Origin: Haliotis rubra
Lineage: Eukaryota
Assembly (NCBI RefSeq): GCF_003918875.1
Contig: NW_025767705.1
Location: 186,001 to 250,000, forward strand
Direction of reading: 5' to 3'
Length of the DNA stretch: 64,000 nt
The notes beneath the pieces are model-generated. The model was given only the letters and a program-made list of their open reading frames with translations, did not search any database and had not been told where the DNA came from. This document shows positions 1,812-23,300 of this stretch, one piece after another. Made by a program: the position numbers and the translations under genes. Position 1 is the stretch's first letter; every line of letters begins with the position of its first letter.

Positions 1812-2216
1812 ACTTAAATATACATACTGATCGAACTGTATGAATAAAAATCCGTAGCAAAAATAAATATGTTGAATAAATTAAAACACATGTACAAATA
1901 CGCATGCACATGTTATATGGGGATTGCAATTTGGTTGCTAATAAATACTACAATAATAGGAACTTAATACGACAGTTGTACAAATTAGCTAAGAGATAAA
2001 CTAAAGTAAATGTTAGTCACATAGCAGATAGTTGCTCTAAAACTACAAACACGTTAGCACAAGAATGTACACATTGTTGACAAGGATGATTTTTCTGCCC
2101 CAAATATACTTCAATGTCTATTAGTCACTATAACGATGTTTAGCACTTGTGGGTTTTCAATTAGTGGTAAGTACGTCACACGCGTCGTAGACGATGTTGC
2201 AATGACGTCGCTTGAG

Positions 2217-2573
2217 TTACTGCTGCTTGTGGGCTATGAATGAATACAGCCTCTGGACCTGACTCTGTTGGGGGGTTAGTTGTTGGTGGGGGAAGGTCGG
2301 ATGCTGGTTTGGGGCACCGGGTAGAGACCCCCCTGGGTGCATCATAGAGCCAGGGGCACCTTGGGGGTAAGGGAAGATTGGGCGTGGCATCATCTGGGTT
2401 GCCTGTCCGGGGGCCATCATGGCGTTCGGTGGGAGGAAGGAGTACGGGGATGCGGCCGACATGAGAGCTGACATAGGCTGGGCGCTGTACGGATTCACTT
2501 GCGGTAATGGGGTTGACTGCTTGTTCTGTTTAGCTTGGCGTCTCATCCGGGCACGTTTGTTCTGGAACCACAC
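2217..2573 (-). CDS. Homeobox gene terminal exon: helix 3 VWFQNKRARMRR plus P/Q/M-rich tail
   Basis: Acceptor ctccag|GTG; WFQN.R motif; ends in TAA. Confidence 0.9.
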   Translation of the reverse strand: MWFQNKRARMRRQAKQNKQSTPLPQVNPYSAQPMSALMSAASPYSFLPPNAMMAPGQATQMMPRPIFPYPQGAPGSMMHPGGSLPGAPNQHPTFPHQQLTPQQSQVQRLYSFIAHKQQ

Positions 2574-5500
2574 CTGGAGCAGGACCGAAATGTTTCATGA
2601 AGAGGATATAATAAGCAGGAAACGGGATACATCAAGAACTTGTTATTGTAATAATGATATTTTATGTTACAAACGAGTGGGTGAGTACTGCTTTACACCG
2701 CTTTTAGCAATATTCCAGCAATATCATGGCGGGGGACACCAGACACCGGCTTCACACAGTGTACCCATATAGGGATCGAACCCGGGTCTTCAGCATGGCG
2801 AGAGGACGCTTTAACCATTAAGCTACCCCTCGGCCCCTGTTACAAACGAGCGAGTGAGTTCAGTTTTACGCAGCTTTTAGCAATACTCCAACAATATCAC
2901 CGCTGGGGATACCAGAAATGGGCATCACACATTGTACCCATGTGGGGAATCGAACCCAGGTCATCGGCGTGACGAGAGAACGCTTTAACCCCTAGGCTAT
3001 CCCACAGCTCCTATACAAACGAAAGACACTAAGGAAACTAAGAAGTTGCTTAGCAACGTAAAGAAAATATCAGATGCTAACCTTTCATATGAACTAAAGC
3101 TTAGTCGACTGCGTTCGTCACCCATACAGATTCACTTACAAATACATGTCTCAGGTAGTTTCAGTGACATAACTTACCCTCAGCCGCTGGTCAGGGATGT
3201 CCAGTTCTCTGGCCAGTCTGTCTATGGTGTCACACTCAGGGTAGGGGTTCTCCATGTAGACCCTCTCCAGCGCCCGAAGCTGACCAGGGTGTAGCTGGTG
3301 CGAGACTTCTTCTTGTAGGACCCCATGTCAGGGTCGGGGTTGGGCCTCTTGCTCCTGGGGGGCGCCAGTAGACGACGAGGATGATGCCGTGGAGGAGATG
3401 GAGGTGTCGCAGATGGAGCTGGTAGATGAACACCTGGATCTCATCAAGGAGGTGTCACTCAGACTGGAGTTAGAGTCCTCCATACAGGGTAGCTGTGATG
3501 TGGTGAGCTCGGGACTACTTCTGGATTCAATGGATGAGGATGGAGAGTCAGTACTGGAGTTGACGTCGATAGCAGAGTCATCTGAAAGGACGATGAAAAA
3601 TAGAATCGTTATATTATTCTTGAGTTCTTAGTACGAGATTTGACTCTACTCTCTTGTGTGATGGTCTACCTGTATGTCGTTAACACTTCAAGTACGGTGA
3701 GTGAGTTTAGTTTTACGCAATATTTCAGCAATATCACGGCGGGGGACACCAGAAATGGGCTTCACGCATTCTATCCGTTTGGGGAATCGAACACGGGTCT
3801 TCGGCGTGACGAGCGAACACTTTAACCACTAGGCTACCCCACCGTCCCCATTTCAAGTACAAATACGATTAAATACTTGGGGTGGAAAGGGTGCCCAGCG
3901 ACCCCTGGCGGTCTTTATAACTGAAATGCTAGTCGTTATGTTACAATAGGTGACTAGACACATATGACTTCGTACCAATAGAGCGTTTGTCGTTACTTGT
4001 TTGACATGCCCAGTTTCAATTATTTGTAGGTCTCTGTGATATATGTCATACTTTGTTGACGATCACATGAAACATCTGTACACCCTCTACCGTTATTGCT
4101 TTCTTTAAAAGAGAATCCATTGAACATACCCTTCCCAGTACATGTTGGACTCGGGTTTGAATCTGGGGATGATGAGAAGGGAGGTAACTGCGTGTTGCCT
4201 ACTGGTATCTGCTGGGTGAAGAAACTGGGCGACATGAAGATGTTGTTGGAGAAGATGGATGGGTTGACGGGATCCCGCTTCTCTGGTGTTGGTTGAGCTG
4301 GAACGTTGGACGGTAGACTCGCAGTGAAGGCATCTGGTGGTTTTGATTGGTCGTGGAGCCTGGAAACCATGTGCTGGTGCTGGAGGTTCGGTTGACTGTC
4401 CATGGACTTCGGGAACTCACTCAGAAAGTAACTCAAAGCATCAGCCTGGCTTTGGAGATGTGGTTCTGCTTTTACTGTCGGGACGGGTGACTCCTCTTGT
4501 GGGGGCTGCTTATCGTTGGATTCAGACGGGACCTTTTCTTCTGTAGAGACTTGTGGCATTTGTGGTTTGGGATCTGATGCAAATCCTGAGATAAGGCTTG
4601 AGTTAAATGGGTGCTGGAAGGGCTGGCTGTAGGGTGTACTGTTGACCCAGGGTAGGGAACCGGGTGGAAACATTGGCGGGTATCCGTTGGTGAGTCGCAC
4701 TGGCTTGGGGTGAGCCAAACCACTTGAGGCGATCTTGGCAGATGAGACATGCTGTTCCCAGAAGTTTACTGGATTTGTAGGGGGGTCTTGGTTGGGTAGG
4801 GAGCTGTAGGGATGATGTCCCGAACTGGAATCAGATGGAATATTATCGGAAACAGATTGTCGGTCGTCATCGCTGGTGTCGGACTCAGATGACTGGCTGC
4901 TGGGTGGTTGAGGGGTGTTGGGCTCGGAGTGCGAGTCCGTGGACTCTCCCTCGTGCAGCAGGAGACGTGTGGAGTGAGTCTGTTGAACTGTTTGGTGAAT
5001 CGGAGGCTGTGGGACTGCTTGGCCGTAGGCGATGGTTGAGCTGTGGTCAGCTGAGGCCAAGTCGGGCACCTGTCCGTCGTGTTCTGTCTTATGTGGCATC
5101 CCAGATAGAGTACTATTGATCAGATTGTTCAGCTGCATCTGGAGGTTGGTTTGGCTGACATTGTCCTCGCCGGCCGGAGACGGCTTGACTCGGAGACCTT
5201 GTCTTGGAAGTGTTGGGTCTCTCTGTTGTCTTCGGTTCTGCCACACGCTGTGTTGACGGTCGGGCTATGATTGGTTGTACCAGATAGTTGAGTTACGGAA
5301 TTCGCTGGCAGCTGGGGTGGTGTTGAGCCAGAAGGGACTGATGAGGTGACTGGGCTGAGGAACTCGAGTGGGCTGTGGTGCCTTGTGCTGTGACAATGAA
5401 CTTTGGACTTGGGATAACTGAACAGACTGGGTCTGAGACTGGTGCGCAGACTGGACTTGGGACTCGGGTTCGGACTTGACTTGGCTCTGGATATCAGACT

Positions 5501-7664
5501 TGGGTTGATCGTGTATGACGGACTGAGATGTAAGCTGGAACTTATTCCAGGGCTGGATGGAATGGTGAATCTGTGTCTGACTGGGAAACGGTCTTATTTG
5601 TGGCTGGTTGTTTGATTGTAGGGGAGGACTTGGCTGCGATTGGGCCTCGGGGGTCTGGGGCTGTTGCTCTGGTTCTATCACTTCTTGATCCCGGGGATGT
5701 TCGGACGACTGGGGTTGGTGAGTCACAACTTGTCCGCTTGACTGAAAGTGAGGTAAATGATGCCTGAAGTTGGCGTAATCTGCAGCACAGAACGTGAAGG
5801 ACTGTCCGGGGTTGCCAAACAACGTATTCTGCACACTCCTTTGAATATCCGTGTGAGAGGGCACCGTCACAGGCGTGTATGTCATGCTGGTGGGAGGAGC
5901 GTAAGTCGTGCCAGACGTCGCAGACAGATAATCGCTGTAGAAGGTTGCGGGGGCGACGTCTTTAACAATGTCAGACATCGTGGTGATGTCGTCTATGGTC
6001 TTCGCGTCCAGAGTTAGGTGGTCGGTGTTCTGGGTCCAAATCGTCTGCTCGGTTTCCTGGACACGAGGAATGCCCTGTTCAGTGTCGTCTGCTTTGTCGC
6101 CCAGAATTGCAAGCCATGGCAGGAGGTCGGAGCTGTTGGTGTAGCTGAAGTGAGGAGCTAGTGACGCTGCAGCGATGGACGGAGGCTGAAACATTAGAGT
6201 TCAAGATTTAGATAAATCGGCCGAATATTCGCTTAATGGCGAGTGAGTGTAATTTTACACTGCTTTCGGCAATATTCAAGTAATATCACGGCAGGGACAC
6301 CTGGGCTCTATTACAGTGTAGCCATGTGGGAAATCGAACCCGGGCCTTAGGCATACGAGCGAATGGTTTAACCACTATGCCATCCCACCGCCCTATTCGT
6401 TTAATAGTACATCGTAATGTCAAAGGTCTTGTATATTGGAAAGTATGTAATGTAGAGCACGATTATGTGCATGCTGCGTTGTGTGATCATGTAAAGTGCA
6501 AAATACGTAATGAATCTCAAGTGGTGAAGCGTCATTAAATTAGCCATGCACATTTTCAGATATTTGAACGATCAGTTTTACCTCGCAATGTAAAATCCAG
6601 GAAACGAGATATTGAGCAGCAATTACAGATTGGTATGATACTATTTCGTATTTTACACAAGTAGCTAACAAAAACATTAATTCTTGGACAAAGTGGAAAT
6701 ATTTTGTATTTCTTTGGTAAGAACGTTTTAATGCAAAATTACGATTGATCTCATTATGAAATTTCTGTACGTGTTATCTTATCATGAAATTCATGATCGG
6801 TCCTCTAAAATATTATGTGTGCTGGTCATTTTGAGTTGATCTTGGACAAAAGCTCTGAAGTTGGCGATTCAGTTTTCGTGCTGCATGTCCACGAGCGCAT
6901 GGAGACAGCATGCATCTCGGGTGTAGGGGTGGTGTCAAAAGCAGAAAGTGATAATTATGACTCGTTTGATATCGCTGACAATGCTTTGATTTGATTTGAG
7001 TTCAAACTCTCCCCGGACAAGTTCAGCTATTATGATCATTCAATAATTACACCACTAGAAAATGCTGAACGTGGAAGTGACTCAACTGATGAACTCATTT
7101 CGAACGCCACCATTACTGAATCCGACTTACCTGGCAGATGTTGACACCCGCACCTTCGTGATGAGATTGAAACTATAGTCTTTATCTGATAACAATTACC
7201 ATTGGCCCAAACCAGTGGTTAGTCATATCTTTACTACAAAATTAACCGAATTTATGTTGAAATAGTTTTTGCACTGTTCATGCACACATTACAGAAACAG
7301 TCAACGAAAAATATTTTCGGGCAATTTCTGACACAAATTATTGACATCCATTTTTAACCTTGAAGGGAGATAACTCTGGTAAATTCAGTTGCTGTTATGA
7401 ACAGATACCAAAGATATTTTATCATATTAACAATAAAGGATGTTTATTGGCTTACCTTGTGAAATTGACGATAAAAGTAAACATATTATGTATATGACCA
7501 AAATATCCAGCAAACGTATGATGTAATAATCCAGACGTCAGCCTGATGTAAATCCAAGTCAATCCCCAGGAAAGGTCAATACTATTTACATCATGCGCTG
7601 TCACCCACATTTTTATTAGCCAATGAAAACCGAAGAGACAACTTACCTCGCAGTGCTCTTCCAT
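2217..7664 (-). CDS. Divergent PRD-class-like (Q50) homeobox transcription factor gene; exons 7664-7647, 6185-4130, 3581-3178, 2573-2217; ~944 codons; frame disrupted (pseudogene or assembly indels)
   Basis: Reconstructed homeodomain KKKSRTSYT(P)GQLRALERVYMENPYPECDTIDRLARELDIPDQRLR|VWFQNKRARMRRQA has R5, L16, P26, W48, F49, Q50, N51, R53. A phase-0 intron lies between codons 46/47, typical of PRD class. All introns are GT..AG with matching phases (0,1,0) and the exon sum of 2835 nt is divisible by 3. In-frame stops at 5265-5267 and 3328-3330. Confidence 0.8.
2678..3005 (-). mobile_element. Two tandem SINE family A copies in the homeobox intron
   Basis: Separated and flanked by repeated TACAAACGA target sequence. 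Confidence 0.85.
3178..3581 (-). CDS. Homeobox gene exon: Ser-rich tract plus homeodomain residues 1-46
   Basis: Acceptor ctttcag|AT, donor AGG|gtaagt; encodes DDSAIDVNSSTDSPSSS... and helices 1-2; indels at 3357-3362 and 3287-3289. Confidence 0.8.
4130..6185 (-). CDS. Homeobox gene large 2056-nt exon, Q/P/S/T-rich low-complexity region
   Basis: ORFs 5265-6194 and 4020-5246 are in the same frame, separated by one TAG; acceptor tttcag|CCT, donor AAG G|gtatgt. Confidence 0.75.
7647..7664 (-). CDS. Homeobox gene putative first coding exon (MEEHCE)
   Basis: ATG ~70 nt downstream of TATA/Inr, strong donor GAG|GTAAGT, phase 0 matches acceptor at 6185. Confidence 0.55.
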
Positions 7665-7729
7665 TTGGTTGGTCAGAATATTTCAGCTTGAGCAAGTGAG
7701 TTGTTTTCGAAGTGTAAGAAATCACAAGT

Positions 7730-7765
7730 TGAATGCTTGTTGTGAACTCATCTCAAATATTTATA
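7730..7765 (-). promoter_or_regulatory. TATA box (TATAAATA, 7765-7758) and Inr-like GCATTC (~7734) of the homeobox gene
   Basis: About 31 nt TATA-to-Inr spacing, just upstream of the ATG at 7664. Confidence 0.55.
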
Positions 7766-10700
7766 CCCAGGAGGACTGTGTTGACATTTTCTCAAACATG
7801 TCACTTGGCAGATGAGTAAAATACCTAATGGAGATGATTAGAGTCGTGTTGTAATTGATTGGCGTTTCGCGAATTGCATGAAGTGTGTTGTTATAACGGC
7901 CATGTCAGTGATTAGTGTATTGTTTACCATCATCTCAATAACACTGTTACCGCCATTGTGAGTTAATCTTGTCAGCCGAGATGTTTTTGTATGAGTAACT
8001 GGATGATTGATAGAATTAACAGAAACTTAGCATTGTCGGTACAGGCCATTTTTAAACAAGGTGGCAGGCTAACGTAAAATATATCTTGACATTTTCGCAA
8101 ATATTTCGTATGATTTTATTCATGGAATTTGACATATTTCATCATGAAAGGAAAAATGTTATTGTATTTTTCTTTAGATTATTTACTAGCGCTTGTTAAA
8201 AGGTTTTTAATCAACATATGGAGAATGAATTTTAATCGTTATCGTCAGGAATGGTCGGGTTTTGTGGGCGATGACTTTCACTATATTCCCGTGAAATGAA
8301 CACGATACCCCCGAGTGACTCTGCACGTGCAGCATGACTTAATCGGTCTGATTGTGGGGTCGTGAGGGAAGATTTCTACAACCGGACTGAATCGGTGCAG
8401 AGATGTATCAACCCCATGAACGGTTACACTGTCACACTGTGACGATAGGTTTACTATATTTCTTTGTTTTAAACTTTTATTTATTCACGAGAGTTAATTA
8501 GGATTGGTGAACAAGCTTTACAGCTTATGTTTACACCGCTCCCATGCAACATATATAATACAAAGTAAACTGAAGAATGTGACGTCATCGATACTGATTA
8601 TTATATAAATAATGTATATTTGTATTGCATCAAATACAAATACAACTATTCTCTAAGTAAACAGAAAGTTACGTTTTGTGTGTCTAACGAGCCATTTGTA
8701 AAAATGTAAATTAATCATGAGCTTTTTGTTCAGTTAATTTCATTATTTTTATTATAATATTATTATGAATAATACTAAATGTTATTTACTAGTATTATGC
8801 TTCTTTCGAAGAAGCAGGTAGCAAAGGTACTGTAAGTCCCCATGGTCCCTAATATGGTGATCTACCTTCAGTTGTTGGCGATCTATAGCCTATTTTGATA
8901 TTGTGCTGTCCCCTATAGTTGAAATGTTGTAGATTTAATTACTAGTTTTAATTTCAAATCTGTGATAATCTAGTTATTTTACTGTCCTTCGTTGACAGGT
9001 TTTTACAGTTTACCATTACTTACTATGTAGAAAATTAATTGTTCTCGTCACGATATGGCTGAAATATTGCCGATGTGACGTTAAATTTTAACTCAATCAC
9101 TCTTTCGAAGAAGGAATATCGTTTAGCGAATAGACACAACATAAATAGGTTGAGTATAATTGGATGCAAAGCCCTTCGCTGTAGTACACATACACTTTCT
9201 CGTTAGATATCATTCATTTCCAAAAATTGGTGTGGGTGGTGGATGGGGTGTAAACTAGGTCTTCAGCATGACGAACTGATGCTTCAACCAGTTACAAACT
9301 AAGGGAACAAAGGAGTATGTTATATTTGGGATCACACTTTCTTGGTAAAATACAGATTCTATTAGTACTTTAGTCCGCAGTCCAGACTACCAGTTGTCCG
9401 ACTTACATTTTTGCGGAAGGGGCGGTGGCTGAGCGGGTTAGGCATCATACTTTGAGTGCTGGCGATTAGGTGTGGGTTCGAATCCAGGATTGGACCCAAT
9501 CCAACAAAAGTACAAGAATCTGTACTTTACTAAGAAAGTGTGATCCCAAATGTAACATATACTACATTTGACCAGATGCTTGATTGGCATTTTAGAAGAT
9601 GATATTTGATGAACATAGAGATGTTTTCTGGGTTACATCTTCTTTTTATTCTCGAGTACAACGTTTCAGGGCTTGTTTTGGCCCCATCATCAGGTAAAAC
9701 TGAACAGTATCTGTTAACTCTGGCCGACGACGTGACGTCACAATGCTATGACGACGCAATACATGTGGTGGTCAATAGATACAGATGACATGGCTAATAG
9801 AATACATGTTATTATGAATATATAAGATGTCGTTTAATTACTGCAAAATTCAATGGCATTGTGTGATCATAAGATAACAAAGAATTTGCTTGGAAACGTA
9901 AAGAAAATATCAGATAGTTCTCCAACATGTTCCATTTGTATTATGACAAACAGCAACAACAACCAAACCCACAAGAGCAAGCCCCAAACAGTACGGCATC
10001 AGTGTATCTTCATGGGCACACTGAGATTGGGGGATTTTTGGGACGCTTCACATATTTTATGTTGTTTCAAGTGAGTGGGTTTGGTTTTACGCCGCTTTAG
10101 CAATATTCCAGCAATATCACGGCGGGGGACACCAGAAATGAGCCTCACACATTGTACCCATGTGGGGAATGGAACCCGGGTGGCCGGTGTGACGAGCGGA
10201 CGCTTTAACCACTAAGCTACCCCACCGCCCCATGTTGCTTCGAAGTCAACGGAAGCTGGTGTCTTTTTAAGATCTCATTGAACAATTCTTTTATCTTGGG
10301 AGCTTTTGAATTATTTCTCCGAGCAATACCATTATCTACGCCTCAGGTTACTGTGAAACACATAACACAATATTGAAGACTATAACTTTCTGTTTCAACT
10401 GGACTCGTTGGGATACCTGTTAGAAATTTGTCCCCCAACAACCCCAGCTTGTCTGAAAATGGGGGCGGTAGTGTTACCTAGTGATTACAACATTCGCTCG
10501 TCACACCGAATTCCTTGGTTTGGAATTTTTGGAATTCCTCACATGGGCACAATGTGTACAGCCAATCTCTACTGTCCCCCACCTTGTTATTACTGGAAAA
10601 TCGGCGTAAAACAACATTCACTCGCTTGTCGCTAAAAGTAGACTGAGCTGATCAGATGACTTCGTGGATTGCGTGTCACTGTAACCCGACGATGCGGACT

Positions 10701-10894: not shown

Positions 10895-11579
10895 AAAATT
10901 CTAAGGACAAAATATGTTCTAGGTAATGTAATAAACGCACACGCACACACACACACGATTATTTCGCCCGCAATTCATTTAAGAAATAACTTCAAACACA
11001 CATTAAGGGAATCTGTAGTTTCGTCAAAAGGAAATCAATGAAACAAACAGAAACAAATAATGATAGAAGTAATAATACTCCCACTTTAAATTACATCCTA
11101 TATATACACATGTGTGCAGTATGCAGTCAAAATGTTCACATAAATCTGTTTGTGAATTAGCTCCATGTGAAGCCACAAATCACGCTCGATATCAAGTGTA
11201 CAGGCGAGTACCAACATCGTTTGTTTTTAACTGTTTGCACACAATTTTAGTCATCTCGGAGAAGGTAAGTCCAGAGAGGTGCAAGACTTTGGTGTATAGC
11301 ACTTTGGTGAGACCCAGTAGTACAGGGAGACCCAGTAGTGCAGGGAGACCCACTAGTGCAGGGAGACCCAGTAGTGCAGGGAGACCCAGTAGTGCAGGGA
11401 GACCCAGTAGTGCAGGGAGACCCAGTAGTGCAGGGAGACCCGGTAGTACAGGGAGGCCCAGTAGTGCAGGGAGACCCGGTAGTACAGGGAGACCCCTCTA
11501 GTACAGGGAGACCCAGTAGTACAGGGTGACCCAGTAGTACAGGGATGGCGCCATCAAACCAAGGATCATAATCAAGACT
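10895..11579. repeat. Left arm of inverted duplication (right arm 13841-14324)
   Basis: Reverse-complement identity, visible as the twin ORFs [12 protein letters not shown] at 11112(+) and 14091(-). Confidence 0.9.
11309..11543. repeat. 18-bp minisatellite (GAGACCCAGTAGTGCAGG), ~13 copies
   Basis: Direct reading. Confidence 0.9.
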
Positions 11580-11582
11580 ACG

Positions 11583-12265
11583 AGATTCGAACCACTGGTC
11601 AAAGGATCCTACACACCTTGGTGAAACAAGTTTGATTTTCATGTTAATCTGGGATTCGAACCAATGATCAAAGGATCCTACACACCTTGGTGAAACAAGT
11701 TTGATTTTCTCGTTAATCTGGGATTCGAACCAATGATCAAAGGATCCTACACACCTTGGTGAAACAAGTTTGATTTTCATGTTAATCTGGGATTCGAACA
11801 AAGGATCAAAGGATCCTACACACCTTGGTGAAACAAGTTTGATTTTCATGTTAATCTGGGATTCGAACCAATGATCAAAGGATCCTACACACCTTGGTGA
11901 AACAAGTTTGATTTTCGCGTTAATCTGGGATTCGAACCAATGATCAAAGGATCCTTCACACCTTGGTGAAACTAGTTTGATTTTCGCGTTAATCTGGGAT
12001 TCGAACCAATGATCAAAGGATCCTTGCACACCTTGGTGAAACAAGTTTGATTTTCTCGTTTATCTGGGATTCGAACCAATGATCAAAGGATCCTTGCACA
12101 CCTTGGTGAAACAAGTTTGATTTTCTCGTTAATCTGGGATTCGAACCAATGATCAAAGGATCCTTGCACACCTTGGTGAAACAAGTTTGATTTTCGCGTT
12201 AATCTGGGATTCGAACCAATGATCAAAGGATCCTTGCACACCTTGGTGAAACAAGTTTGATTTTA
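11583..12265. repeat. 69-70-bp tandem repeat, ~10 copies
   Basis: gattcgaaccaatgatcaaaggatcct..caccttggtgaaacaagtttgattttc; 23-aa periodicity in a spurious ORF. Confidence 0.92.
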
Positions 12266-17326: not shown

Positions 17327-20300
17327 GGGTTAAAACCCCTGAACCCCATTGGCTCCGTCAACGCAAAAAAATCTTCAATGTGGTCTTAAGTCATTTTCAA
17401 AAAAGAGGGGTGGTGGTTCGGACCCCTTCTGGATCCACCAATGCAAACATAAGCAATAATTAAACACATGCTATGTTATGTTTCAACAGACTATCGCTAT
17501 CACAATAGTTGTTTCCCTTCAGTACTCATGATCACCCCTATCTCCCGGTGTTCGTGTTTCATGCTGGTGCAGTGTGTGTGTCAACACAACAGGTACATAG
17601 TAGTTATTCTCAGTTATGTGGACATGTTGTCCAGACACAAGTGAATGTTTATCCCTACAATCTCTACTTACGTTCGATTCCAAAGCCCCGGACGACCCTG
17701 CATGGTGAACCGCCGCACTAGATATCAACCAAAATAAGGTCATCTTTTGTGTGTTTTTTTATCTTCAATCTCGAGAGCTGGCTGGCGAAAAATATAATTC
17801 GAACATATTCTAAAAAATGTCACTAACTGTGCAACTTATTTTTTGAAATTAAGAAATTTTAGATCACTTGGTAATAACCATTAAATTAATTTATGATGTA
17901 ATTCAATTGCATTGGTTGGGAATAAAAAATGGTTAACAGTAGTAAACACGTATAAATATATGTATACCTAAATGGGTGATGGTAGTATAAATGCGTACAC
18001 ATTCTGATTCTCGTCTGAGAAATTGAACATCCGATTGTTGACATAAATATTATAAATTTAGCATCAATAAACCATATCATACATCAAACTTTTATGATTT
18101 CGCAACTCTGTGTGACGTTGAATTCACATGTATTTAAAAAAAAGATACGACAGCTTCACTCAGTTGTGTGTTACAACCATACACTGTTGTACTCCTCCTT
18201 CAACAAGCAGTCGTGTTGGATTTCACTATCGGGCAAAAGTATACACCCGATTTGGAGTTAATGCTGAAACGCACGTAGCTATGCTTTATCTATGCCACGA
18301 GTGTCTTAAACAATCCTGTTTGGGTAAACACGATCCTGACTGTGTGGCACACTCTGCAATATACTGGTATACGAGGCCATGACACAATAAAATCATGGCG
18401 AATGTGGGATTCGAACCCAGAATCAAAGGTTTCGGACACGCCCAAGGGACGCAGACTATGTTGGCTGTCCAGACAAACTGAGACGAAAGGGCCGCCTTTG
18501 TCCCAAGTGCGGATGTGAAGAAGCCATGTAAGAAGTGAAGCAATCCCCAAGTGCAGGAAAACATGACTTTAATCACGATCTAATGGCCACTTTGTGAACA
18601 TATCACCAGTGATATAACGACCAGGTATGACTCATGTACGTAAGAAAACAACACCCTCCCCTAACCAATAGAAATAAAACACACAAACCCCTGCATGCGC
18701 CCCCGGAAACAGCACGTCGATGTAAGTTGCTGAAAAAGCAGCCTTTGCAATTGTCACTCAATAGCTACCTTTAGCCCCAAAGTATTGTAATTGTCACATT
18801 GTTAACCAGTGCCTCATGATCAGTCGCTCATAAAGACATTATTTTCCCTATCGTCAGTTCGCCCTGAAAACTGTGGATTTGTCAAGAGCAGACTCAAAAG
18901 AGAGGGCCAGTGCCGAGAGGGAGGCCAATCTGATGCGAGAGCTGGACCATGATCACGTGGTGCGGTACGTGGCGTCCACCTTTAACGGGTCCACCCTATT
19001 CATCTTCACGGAGTACTGCGAGGGCGGGGATCTGTCACACTTCCTGGAAGACTCCAATGGGAAACTGCCTGAAGACTTGATCGTGTGTTGGGTGTATCAG
19101 ACGGCTTCAGCATTAGCGGTGAGTGGACGAGTGTGCTTTTTAGCTACTGTATATCTCTGCGAAATACTCATGTAGGTAATCGAACCAGGGCCTTCGGCAT
19201 GATCAACAGACGCTGAAATCCACCCCCACCTTCCTGGCATAATGCATCTGGAGTGATGTGGATATTTATATGATTATTAACTGAGTTCAGAGGAGAGGAC
19301 TGAGTTAGGTTTTGTGAAAACTTACAACCACTTCTCTGCCACTGATACTTTTTATTCATGGGTTATAGAACTCCCAGAATTTACAATTACTTATCGTGTG
19401 CCGGGAAACTATGTTGCAGTACTTGCATCAGATGAAGATCCTACACAGAGATCTGAAACCCCAAAACATCTACCTCACTGCTGAGGGGGACATCAAACTG
19501 GGGGACCTCGGTATTGCAAGGTATGAATACAATGTACTTCGAACACTCTTGATGTCTGGAAACAATACATTTAGGATTGCATGGCACACCTATGATACAG
19601 TATACGCGGGGCTGGTGTTGGAAGTCGATTCAGCACAAGAACGTTGACAAAACAGTGAACATTCTCATTGTAGGGTCCTCGATAAAGGAATGGGCATGGC
19701 GTTAACAATGGCAGGAACCCCGTTCTACATGAGTCCCGAGATATTCCAGATGAAAGGATACGACCACAAGGTAGCTCTCTTCCTTAACTTTATATACAAC
19801 TTGTGACGTCAAACTATTGTTTTGTAGGGCCCTGGTTTCGCGGGATAGCTTTTCAGCAGGCACTTTCAACTGAATGTACCTCTGTCCCTGGGTTTTTCAG
19901 CAGAATATACCTCTGTATAGGGTCTTTCAGCAGAATATACCTCTGTCCAGGGTCTTTCAGCAGGATATACCTCTGTCCCAGGGTCTTTCAGCAGAATATA
20001 CCTCTGTCCCAGGGTCTTTCAGCAGAACATACCTCTGTCCCTGGGGTCTTTCAGCAGAATATACCTCTGTCCTTGGGGTCTTTCTGCAAAATATACCTCT
20101 GTCCCAGGGTCCTGGGATCAGTTTGTTCCCGGGACTTTTAACAGAATATTATGTTTCTCTGTCACTGAAAACAATATTTATTTGGTCGTAGGTTACAACT
20201 CCGAAAAAACACATGTAAAACAAATTAACAAAAGCAACAGTAAAAATGAAAGGTGAAAATCTAACAAAGAAATATGCATATTTGAAGATATGCTGTAGGT

Positions 20301-23300
20301 CCTGCTAAAAATGTTCGGCTCTTCCAAACCATTTGGCAAGTCCCTTATCTTCACACTTTTATTTCAGACCGACATCTGGAGTTTCGGGTGTGTGGTGTAC
20401 GAGATCGCGGCAGGAGAACATGCTTTCAGCGCCCCAGATATGTCATGCCTCGTTTTTGCAATCGTCTCTGGCAAAGTAGGTAAACTGTATTAACAGTAAA
20501 CCAAAATGATAAACATTTTAAACCGTTTCCAGAACACCAGGAAGAATAAATGTCATCGTTCCTCTGTCATAGGTTCCTTTGATACATACATCTTACAGTG
20601 ATGGGCTGCGTCAACTGGTGAAGTCGATGATGGACAAGGACCCGGATGAACGACCAAGTGCTGAACAGCTGCTAGACCGTAGACCAGTCAAGGAATTCGG
20701 AAACAACACTCAAAGTGTATGTACACATACGATTGTCTGCAAACTGGGCAGATACAAAAGTGCCAAGTTTACGCTGGCGACCGAAGTGTCTCTAGGAGCG
20801 CCACTTACCATGGCTGTGCAGTGTTGCAAGAAGTCTATGATCAAGGATTCGAAACCCTGAAAATTCTTCTTGCTTTGTCAGCATCATATTGCCAATTTGG
20901 AAAGCATATAAGACCTTGACAAGCGAACGCTTTAACCTCTATGCTACCCTACTGCTCACTCTCCTATTTTCAGCCCATGATAATTATGAAGAAATTCAAG
21001 TTCAGGACCAAGTGGGGAACACATGACTCAAGTGTAGACGTTTCCAAGATGTTCACGACGGCAGAGCTGAACCCTCCTCCATGCTTCGGAGAACATGATA
21101 TTCGCATTCTAAAGACTCTACTGCTGCACAGGAAGAGGTTGGGCCGACCTTCGCCCTCGGATATCAGCGAAACTGTCAAAGCGAACAAATACCTTCCTGC
21201 GATGAGGGTTAAGGAGGAGGCGATTGAGCTGAACCTGAAGGAGGACCCAAGCCATGCAGCCGTCATGGAGTCAGTGATGCGGGGATTGATGGGTGTGATG
21301 GTTGATTCTCAGGATGTGAGTGTTCATACTATGTAGAGACAATAATAATGTAGAGCGGTCTAATCAAAACTAGTGGTCAGGGTCCCCATCCACAAGGCGT
21401 TCGTAACGTTCGAATGGCCTAGTTTGTACGTGTACTTCTTCAGTATCACGTTCAACAAACGAGCGTAGCGCTGTCAGTGTTAAAGTATGATAGTTACGAT
21501 CACCTTAGCGATACGATCGCTTTATGGAACGGGCACCTGCTCTCCATTGGTTGTCTATGTTAAGGTCGCATGCAGATTCCGATACCTTTCGGTATGGACT
21601 TACCGAAACAAATCGTCAAAAATGCAAATTCAACTTATAAAGTTGAAAAATAACGCGATGAAAAAAACCGCGCGAAATCGGAGTTCAAACGTTTCACTAA
21701 TTTTCCCCCGACTTTTCTGGGGAAAACTGGTTTCAACAGCTGGGCTGCGCTCATAGCACGTGCGCAGTGAAATAGGTTCGCGCAACTTGGAAGCGGGCTG
21801 TCCGGTGAATACTCGGCGAAGGCTTTGGTGTGAGCTATTTTTCTAATGTTTTGTTGATATCTCACAGGCGCGAGCTTTTTATATGTTATGACAGTAAATT
21901 AACTGTTTATATAATTTCATTTGTCTGTTTCACCACACGTTCTTCTTACCGAGTCACTTTCTCAGTTCGATACTTAAAAGCAATGTCATTATTTAGCGTT
22001 GACAGAATTTCTAACTGTGATATAGATATGTCGTTGTCACAGACAAAACTCAATGTCTTGTTTTATTGACACCTGTGTGTCTGCCTGCCTGCCTGTCTGC
22101 TAATGACAATATTCAATACACAGCTGCTATCACTGACCACATGCAATTTGAACTTAACACCAATCAGGCTATACACCATAAACAAAATGCATTGATTTAT
22201 GGCCCGAGTTCGGTCTCTGTCACATTATGTAATTACACAGACAGACAGGTGTGATACTTGAACACATGACATGTTATGATGTCTGTTGATTGTAAAATGT
22301 TATACACAAACAATGAGCATGTATTTACAAAACCCAACATCTCTATATGTACACACACAATGAGCCGTCAGGGCATCTGCAGTAAATGAACCAGCCGTTA
22401 CACTTGAGTGCACCCTCACCCGCTCTGACTGGGTTCGGTATCCCGGCTGCTTCGTTTCTTGGGAAGTAAAACCCAAGTACACAATTTTGCAATTTTGATT
22501 TGCGATTGTACGGTTATAATTTTGTTTATATGTTTTTTCATAACCAGCAATGTATATTATATGTCATGAATAAGTGATAATTGTGTTTCAATTATGTTTG
22601 ATTTTTTGGTTGCATGTGACCTTTAAAGTATGGTAGTTACGACCACCTTAGCGATACGATCGCTTTATGGAATAGACACCTGCTCTCCATTGCTTGTCTA
22701 TGTTAAAGTATGGCAGTTACGACCACGTTAGCGATACGATCGCTTTATGGAACGGGCACCTGCTCTCCATTGCTTGTCTATGTTAAGGTATGGCAGTTAC
22801 GACCACGTTAGCGATACGATCGCTTTATGGAATGGACACCTGCTCTCCATTTCTTGTCTATGTTAAAGTATGGCAGTTACGACCACGTTAGCGATACGAT
22901 CGCTTTATGGAATAGACACCTGCTCTCCATTTCTTGTCTATGTTAAAGTATGGCAGTTACAACCACCTTAGCGATACGATCGCTTTATGGAATGGCCTCC
23001 TGCACTCCATTGCTGATCGTAAGAGAGACCTGCTGATTGATGCAATACCGCGGATTGCTGTTCAAGGTTTGCTTGATACGATTAAGTAGCTCATTCATTT
23101 ATTCATTCATTATCAGAAGCTAGTGAGTGTCATGTAGGTGATTATCCCTAATATAGTTGGTGTATATTTCAGCGCACCCTCAAAGCTTCAGCCATCTTGC
23201 CGGCTTTGGACATTGATCGTACAGGAGGCCAGGGGTCATCTACTGAGAAAGGTCTGCAGCATAGCATATTTACAGCTCTACGAAATATACGTAGTAAGAC

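Follow-up and report, generated by a model that had tools for sequence, protein, structure and literature searches.

Is the homeobox gene at positions 2217-7664 of a 64,000-nt stretch of the Haliotis rubra genome an orphan, or does it belong to a known family, and is it intact? The stretch, referred to as the window, covers positions 186,001 to 250,000 of contig NW_025767705.1 (forward strand; RefSeq assembly GCF_003918875.1), and all positions given without a contig name count from its first letter. An earlier note, made from the sequence alone, had described the gene as an 'orphan-like' PRD-class homeobox gene with a disordered N-terminus of about 790 residues. The evidence presented here indicates that the locus very probably encodes an intact, expressed PRD-class Q50 homeodomain factor of about 946 aa, which belongs as a divergent paralogue to the mollusc/trochozoan PRD Clade VI (PRD-VI), and the gene can be regarded with confidence as an addition to a family that is known but poorly characterised. 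Its four exons are on the minus strand (Table 1), the reading frame being that obtained after correction of the assembled sequence as described below.

Membership of PRD Clade VI

For homology searches the exon pieces were used separately, and the homeodomain of the natural orthologue from H. asinina (RefSeq P0001, residues 697-776, 80 aa) served as the whole-homeodomain query. An exhaustive search of 1.84 billion representatives, with a match list crowded by multi-homeodomain proteins, returned only seven single-homeodomain proteins above 78 bits (79-85 bits), with 71-75 bits and 31-35 of 60 identical residues over the 60-aa core. These proteins come from Solemya, Sinanodonta, Potamilus, Pinctada, Saccostrea and Lottia (LOTGIDRAFT_154246-9) and from one contig of unknown origin, and a further search found similar proteins in Mytilus and four scallops. 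The seven are of the sequence type labelled Cg_PRD3 and Lg_PRD-VI in the alignment of Barton-Owen et al., 2018 (PMC6118893). PRD Clade VI itself was described by Paps et al., 2015, with a semi-conserved SPQQVRS at homeodomain positions 9-15 and without monophyletic support, and the members listed there are approximately 17 Lottia genes, three Pinctada genes, Cgi_PRD3 and one Capitella gene (PMC5322547).

The abalone homeodomain combines Q50 with Y8, Y20, I31, L45 and K52, all residues that the earlier note had read. Rare residues common to the gene and the clade are Y8, P10, ENPYP at positions 22-26, IP at 40-41 and WFQNKRAR with K52; Y8 and K52 are found in all aligned clade members and L45 in several, Y20, C28, I31, R46 and M56 being specific to the abalone gene. 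An alignment that began 150 residues ahead of the homeodomain and ran to the C-terminus revealed three features shared by bivalves, Lottia, Gigantopelta and two abalone genes, the second of these being a more canonical PRD-VI gene at 669 kb of H. rubra contig C780 (locus L032). These features are a homeodomain exon that begins serine-rich, a first tail motif that reads SPYSFL in the abalone gene and SPYGF, APYGF or SAYGM in its relatives, and a second tail motif, QMMPRPIFPYP in the abalone gene and QVVPNPFFPYP or SAPGPFFPYP in its relatives. Shared sequence outside the homeodomain is a criterion of the present analysis and is absent from the published definition of PRD-VI. With Y8, K52, L45 and two C-terminal motifs held in common with PRD-VI, the term 'orphan-like' was an overstatement.

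In a maximum-likelihood tree of 60 columns and 80 rows, the gene joined 34 PRD-VI-like rows as their sister with a support of 95/56. Constraint tests on the same 60-column set rejected neither nesting among the gastropods (P value of the approximately unbiased test, p-AU, 0.36) nor a place beside the C780 gene (p-AU 0.29). In a second tree, to which Gigantopelta was added and from which the longest outgroups were removed, the gene fell among gastropod members with weak support. A tree of homeodomain and tail, comprising 154 columns and clade members only, split the gastropods including this gene from the bivalves (63/30) and gave the gene a long stem (1.0 changes per site). The gene would stem from a PRD-VI duplication, the gastropod lineage being the best, albeit weakly supported, placement, and its homeodomain would have diverged fast (Y20, C28, I31, M56) and have been conserved since.

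Several points weigh against this assignment. Homeodomain identity to PRD-VI members is 52-60%, below that among the members themselves, and the SPQQVRS signature reads TPGQLRA, which keeps P, Q and R, has conservative exchanges at three positions (T/S, L/V and A/S) and carries G in place of one Q; the canonical C780 copy reads TPMQVRQ at the same site. The second tree did not recover a strict PRD-VI clade including the gene, yet such a clade was not rejected (p-AU 0.445), and trees built on the homeodomain only are unstable, a place inside or beside PRD-VI shifting with the outgroup set. Homeodomain phylogeny, proposed as a check with the earlier note, speaks for PRD-VI in the first tree and leaves the clade unrecovered in the second. 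Furthermore, the best match of the Lottia protein P0093 in the H. rubra genome is the C780 gene (E 1.1e-14, 57%), with the long-form gene of the window second (E 9e-11, 38%). Because the reciprocal best match fails, the long-form gene is taken as a paralogue and not as the direct orthologue of the Lottia or oyster PRD-VI genes.

On these grounds it could be argued that the gene is the founder of a PRD-like family of its own, restricted to abalone, its likeness to PRD-VI reflecting deeper PRD-class ancestry or convergence. Such a reading would draw on the modest homeodomain identity, on the first tree, in which the 34 PRD-VI-like rows group without the gene (99/86), on the finding of orthologues in Haliotis only and on the lack of monophyletic support for Clade VI in the original paper (PMC5322547). 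It is nevertheless unlikely, given that the gene shares with the clade not only the rare residues Y8, P10, ENPYP and K52-A54-R55 but also the SPYG[FM]-like and QVVPxPFFPYP-like motifs and the serine-rich start of the homeodomain exon, that the tree of homeodomain and tail puts it among gastropod members and that its nesting inside the gastropod PRD-VI rows was not rejected.

The reading frame, its conservation and its transcription

The window as assembled has no open homeobox frame: exon 2 lacks six bases and contains an in-frame TAG, and exon 3 carries two compensating frameshifts (Table 1). The exon-2 error cluster also includes three wrong letters at 5300-5302 and creates the false TAG at 5267-5265. 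In exon 3, the C missing from the CCC run at 3289-3287 puts homeodomain residues 1-9 in another frame than residues 10-46, and the extra base at 3357-3362, approximately 70 nt upstream of it, places a false TGA (3330-3328) in the frame in which the serine-rich stretch is read. Every feature listed in the earlier note exists, but the letters of the window are not one open frame, a point that went unmentioned there.

Public short-read contigs were aligned over 2100-7800, namely those of a run with the same species label (X1, ~160x), of a sister species (X3), of a presumed RNA run of a related species (X16) and of a further RNA-type run (X21). The X1 and X3 contigs both insert single bases at all six exon-2 sites and after 3286, and the run at 3357/3358 loses one base, at 3357 in X1 and X16 and at 3358 in X3. 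The RNA-type contigs of X16 agree with the corrections at both exon-3 sites, including the insertion after 3286, and X1 has no second contig with the form of the window at any of the eight exon sites. A second H. rubra contig, C2133 (1.13 Mb), is collinear over C2133:33656-95872 with window 788-62153 (98.5% identical, with a range of 97-99%), nearly the whole window being covered; its likeliest source is the second haplotype, retained in the assembly, with a recent segmental duplication as the alternative. C2133 agrees with the corrected form at all eight sites, having the same six exon-2 bases and reading straight through exon 3. A single additional C at C2133:38466 is peculiar to C2133 and corresponds to window 5625, where X3 is unchanged; exon 4 is identical in the two copies. 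All 12 one-base length differences between C2133 and the window in this 6 kb adjoin the same base, and the eight exon length errors are all one-base miscounts, nearly all of them in G/C runs. The H. rubra assembly is given as nanopore-based in a reference-list entry (PMC7566022, reference 28), and all eight errors are consensus (homopolymer) errors. The breaks are considered assembly errors because the short-read contigs of two species, the second contig and the H. asinina orthologue all correct them. Taking the supported base at each site and joining the exons computationally gives a corrected coding sequence (CDS) of 2841 nt, encoding 946 aa without internal stop, with the homeodomain at residues 783-842.

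The public H. rubra model P0003 (window 3331-5135), a 420-aa 'uncharacterized serine-rich protein C215.13-like', lacks the homeodomain because its start is an internal Met downstream of the false TAG and its end is the false TGA. Homopolymer errors probably truncate further gene models in this assembly. Since such errors cut the frame and the RefSeq model has no homeodomain, homeobox surveys of the H. rubra assembly would miss this gene and probably others like it.

Selection on the gene was assessed against H. asinina, in which exons 2-4 are connected in P0001 (869 aa, 'uncharacterized protein') precisely as in the present model and the frame stays open for 66 codons further upstream of the RefSeq start, up to the conserved acceptor. 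Between the two species the rate of synonymous substitution (dS) is 0.29 and the ratio of nonsynonymous to synonymous substitution (dN/dS) is 0.14 overall. The ratio is 0 in the homeodomain (11 silent and 0 replacement changes), 0.05 in the C-terminal tail, 0.07 in the serine-rich part and 0.19 in exon 2, with a minimum of 0.07 at residues 407-506. Between the TATA box and the donor of exon 1, both included, H. asinina has a nearly identical sequence, the surrounding 2 kb being only ~76% identical, and exon 1 differs by one replacement, H to Y. In a third abalone species (P0002) the exon-2 frame is open across 738 aa with 79% identity. By its pattern of substitution, the gene is under purifying selection across abalone species.

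Intron 2 is spliced in the presumed RNA of a related species. Contig 12 of X16 runs from 4340 to 4132 and resumes at 3583-3377, and this join (4132/3583) corresponds to removal of the predicted 548-nt GT-AG intron 2, allowing for a G-to-A allele at 4131. The remaining X16 contigs comprise parts of exons 2, 3 and 4 (contig 9 being 2157-2607), and within 2100-7800 none covers unique intron or intergenic sequence. Both X16 and X21 RNA-type contigs show some depth in the 7639-7800 bin, which is the region of exon 1.

The evidence for an intact and transcribed gene has its own counterweights. The long X1 contig was reported with eight gaps, of which seven are listed and the eighth is unplaced; splicing of the intron between homeodomain codons 46 and 47 was not seen in X16, where contigs 9 and 11 extend 34-41 nt into it; and the transcription evidence comes from X16, a run whose RNA status is presumed and whose species is other than H. 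rubra. The window copy might, in principle, be a young pseudogene or null allele, with the stop and frameshifts real on this haplotype, since the assembled exons carry the TAG and eight single-base length differences, the RefSeq model is truncated to match and C2133 has a frameshift of its own. This is very unlikely: the same-species X1 contigs have the corrected form at eight of eight exon sites, the length differences are all homopolymer miscounts in a nanopore-based assembly, the lesions of the window and of C2133 do not overlap, so that an intact reading exists at every site, and the dN/dS of 0.14 comes with no homeodomain replacement relative to H. asinina. The pseudogene reading was dropped on the short-read contigs, on C2133 and on dN/dS.

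Protein form and the classical PRD families

The corrected protein consists of a long front part, a homeodomain close to the C-terminus and a short tail. The front 782 residues are 46% S+P+Q+T. A Pfam search recognised the 41-aa exon piece of the window as Homeodomain (PF00046; E 1.1e-7, 32 bits against a cut-off of 22.9) and gave 69.9 bits (E 1.6e-19) for the full homeodomain of the H. asinina orthologue. In the 869-aa P0001 the Homeodomain was its only match, with a paired domain lacking and the OAR motif giving no hit at E up to 1, and in the exon-2 pieces of the window it found no domain. The absence of a paired domain N-terminal to the homeodomain speaks against the Pax/paired-box families. 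The AlphaFold model of P0001 shows three helices in residues 711-772 with a predicted local distance difference test (pLDDT) score of 78-92, at the very C-terminal end another helix that is short and weaker, and no ordered segment in the first 710 residues, pLDDT being below 50 across the exon-2 part; the model was made from a single sequence and is weak on N-terminal order. The disordered N-terminus of the earlier note thus reappears as a front of about 780 aa for which AlphaFold and Pfam predict no structure.

The residues that usually contact DNA are kept (R5, V47, W48, F49, Q50, N51 and R53), from which DNA binding of the TAAT type would be expected. By analogy with other Q50 paired-like homeodomains, the protein would enter the nucleus and bind TAAT-type sites through helix 3, and the long S/P/Q/T-rich region would recruit co-factors, acting as an activation or repression region. 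A search for eh1/octapeptide patterns found none in the H. asinina orthologue or in PRD-VI clade members other than the C780 copy. No new mechanism is implied, the protein being expected, from its sequence, to act as an ordinary sequence-specific transcription factor.

Among solved structures, the 80-aa query matched classical PRD homeodomains at 43-58 bits (Pax6, Phox2B, Gsc, Crx, Prrx2, Prd, Hesx1, Otx2, Alx4, Pax3 and Pitx2), with Alx4 and Aristaless at 42-49 bits and one engrailed construct at 57.8 bits. The low Alx4 and Aristaless scores and the missing OAR motif speak against the Aristaless-related families (Arx, Alx, Rax, Otp and others). The best-scoring structures are nearly all of the PRD class and position 50 is Q, which assigns the gene to that class. 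The earlier proposal of a spiralian lineage-specific PRD clade outside every classical family is borne out by mollusc matches at 79-85 bits against at most 58; to be set against this is that classical PRD families are not in the trees, and their exclusion rests on bit scores. It is highly improbable that the gene evolved rapidly within one of the classical bilaterian PRD families (for example Arx/Alx, Pax4/6-like, Prop or Isx) or that it is DUX-like. PRD-VI relatives do bear automatic names such as 'intestine-specific homeobox-like', 'prophet of Pit-1-like' and 'Hox-A3-like', and DUX4 is the top match among solved structures and shares NPYP. Nevertheless, the 84 bits of DUX4 are the sum of two domains (each ~45 bits and 25 of 60 identical), Pax6, Phox2B, Gsc, Crx, Prrx, Otx2, Alx4 and Pitx2 stay at 43-58 bits against 79-85 for PRD-VI with the same query, no single-domain protein beyond the seven mollusc-type matches reaches 78 bits among the 1.84 billion representatives, and Pfam detects neither a paired domain nor an OAR motif.

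The locus, its relatives in the genome and known systems

The coordinates of the gene and of the assembly errors are collected in Table 1. The PRD-type intron, the TATA promoter and a homeodomain near the C-terminus following an exon of about 2 kb, as read in the earlier note, are all present, the exon being S/P/Q/T-rich and 2.06 kb long. An intron between homeodomain codons 46 and 47 is common among PRD-class genes, for example hbn, otp and rx of Nematostella (PMC2938728), and lies at the identical place in H. asinina. The ATG at 7664, with A at -3 and G at +4, is in good context and is probably used as the start codon. Another candidate start, the ATG at 6194, was rejected: its 'atgtttcag' is the intron-1 acceptor, the M is missing in another abalone species (P0002), and phase 0 is matched by a conserved exon further upstream that carries an ATG. 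Copies of a short interspersed nuclear element (SINE) occupy parts of all three introns, outside the coding function of the homeobox gene; their summed depth is millions-fold, with thousands of repeat joints in all four DNA/RNA runs, by which the joint tables were swamped.

Table 1. Features of the homeobox gene and errors in its assembled sequence (window positions).
Feature	Position	Strand	Details
TATA box	7765-7758	-	TATAAATA; ~95 nt 5' of start codon; read in sequence, kept in H. asinina
Exon 1, coding part	7664-7647	-	ATG + 5 codons (MEEHCE); donor gag/gtaagt, phase 0
Exon 2, S/P/Q/T-rich	6185-4130	-	2056 nt as assembled, 2062 nt corrected; acceptor tttcag/CCT, donor aag g/gtatgt, phase 1
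Exon-2 error cluster	5181-5333	-	Single bases missing after 5181, 5230, 5289, 5303, 5313, 5333
Exon 3	3581-3178	-	Serine-rich stretch, basic arm, homeodomain residues 1-46 (homeodomain part 3314-3178); acceptor tttcag/at in phase matching exon 2; donor agg/gtaagt after homeodomain codon 46, phase 0
Exon-3 error pair	3286-3362	-	One base too few in run 3289-3287 (CCC), one too many in 3357-3362
Intron 3, between homeodomain codons 46/47	3177-2574	-	Phase 0, GT-AG; donor agg/gtaagt at 3178/3177, acceptor cag/gtg at 2574/2573
Exon 4	2573-2217	-	Opens at V47; homeodomain 47-60 (VWFQNKRARMRRQA), carries WFQNKRARMRRQA; P/M-rich tail with SPYSFL and QMMPRPIFPYP; stop TAA at 2219-2217
SINE copy, intron 3	2673-3054		Repeat depth
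SINE copy, intron 2	~3628-4009		Repeat depth
SINE copy, intron 1	6286-6423		Repeat depth

Elsewhere in the window, protein-kinase exons on the plus strand at 18873-20860 fit the NEK-like neighbours of the earlier note, and a Pkinase gene also flanks the orthologue in H. asinina. Tandem repeats at 11112-12044 can be read on both strands: the plus strand gives GRPSSA-type units, the minus strand units of ~21 aa (VSPRCVGSFDHWFESQINMKIKL). The PRD-VI array of Lottia adjoins a TMEM181/WLS-like gene, a family that lies on other contigs in H. rubra (C2304, C2252), and the PRD-VI locus of Gigantopelta has no informative neighbours.

Alleles aside, the H. rubra homeodomain nearest to that of the long-form gene is the one of the C780 gene at 669 kb. 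The C780 gene resembles the long-form gene in having a serine-rich exon with homeodomain residues 1-46, a phase-0 intron and an exon with VWFQNKRAR and a P/M-rich tail, and differs from it by a canonical PRD-VI homeodomain and an upstream exon with PKRTSAIV and FSVNDLL motifs, neither of which was found in the long-form gene. In this upstream exon (L032:524-955), PKRTSAIVQPM may be compared with PKKTSAIVTPM at the N-terminus of unionid proteins, and FSVNDLL is eh1-like.

At least 19 further PRD-VI-like loci were found in the H. rubra genome (L003-L020, L032 and L035), situated at C1224:2.73-2.87 Mb, C2545:2.660-2.663 Mb and C780:395-400 kb and 669 kb and on C268, C862 and C886. All have Y8, QVR at 12-14, IP at 40-41 and WFQN(K/R)R(A/S)R, and many are in tandem arrays; several homeodomains are identical and probably represent haplotype duplicates. 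The phase-0 intron after homeodomain codon 46 is present in 19 of 19. A literature search retrieved no paper on PRD expansion in abalone; the comparable expansion listed for Lottia by Paps et al., 2015 (PMC5322547) would make H. rubra the second gastropod with a large PRD-VI expansion. It is conceivable, if doubtful, that the gene is one product of a large and largely undescribed abalone PRD-VI radiation (at least 20 loci) in which the long form has taken on a new role. If so, this role might lie, for example, in egg, cleavage or larval-shell stages, exerted via the changed homeodomain (Y20, C28, I31, M56) and the front of about 780 aa, and spiralians would have in this radiation a counterpart to that of DUX/ETCHbox in mammals or to their own SPILE radiation.

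For PRD Clade VI, a weakly defined, spiralian-specific homeobox group, the motifs outside the homeodomain could help to make it a proper family, and the gene offers a case of a paralogue that strongly diverged and was then tightly conserved. Compared with the members of the clade (Cgi_PRD3, the Lottia array including LOTGIDRAFT_154246-154249, Pinctada and one Capitella gene), the abalone gene is alike in Q50, Y8, P10, Q12, R14, ENPYP, IP at 40-41 and WFQNKRAR, in the serine-rich stretch before the homeodomain and the two P/M/Y-rich motifs after it, in the lack of paired domain and OAR and in the 46/47 intron, the last as examined in the PRD-VI-like loci of H. rubra and not in oyster or Lottia. 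It is unlike them in Y20, C28, I31, R46 and M56, the members having F20 and W56, in its 946 aa with a front of ~780 aa, most members being 267-512 aa long, and in sharing its genome with a more canonical PRD-VI gene. The closest protein in layout is the 'mucin-5AC-like' P0164 of Gigantopelta aegis (761 aa), which has an S/T/P-rich front of ~630 aa, a homeodomain near the C-terminus, the same tail motifs and the highest homeodomain identity found to the abalone gene (36 of 60); because of this protein, the long front part is not unique to the abalone gene. Its homeodomain, in contrast, is canonical, with F20 and W56, its front cannot be aligned with that of the abalone gene and, with a homeodomain ~70% identical to that of the C780 gene, P0164 is more likely the orthologue of the latter, as judged from these comparisons. 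Finally, mammalian DUX4 and the ETCHbox genes are likewise of the PRD class, have NPYP in helix 1-2 and form a lineage-restricted radiation with divergent homeodomains beside conserved relatives; the abalone gene differs in having a single homeodomain, with ~42% identity, and the likeness is one of evolutionary mode only.

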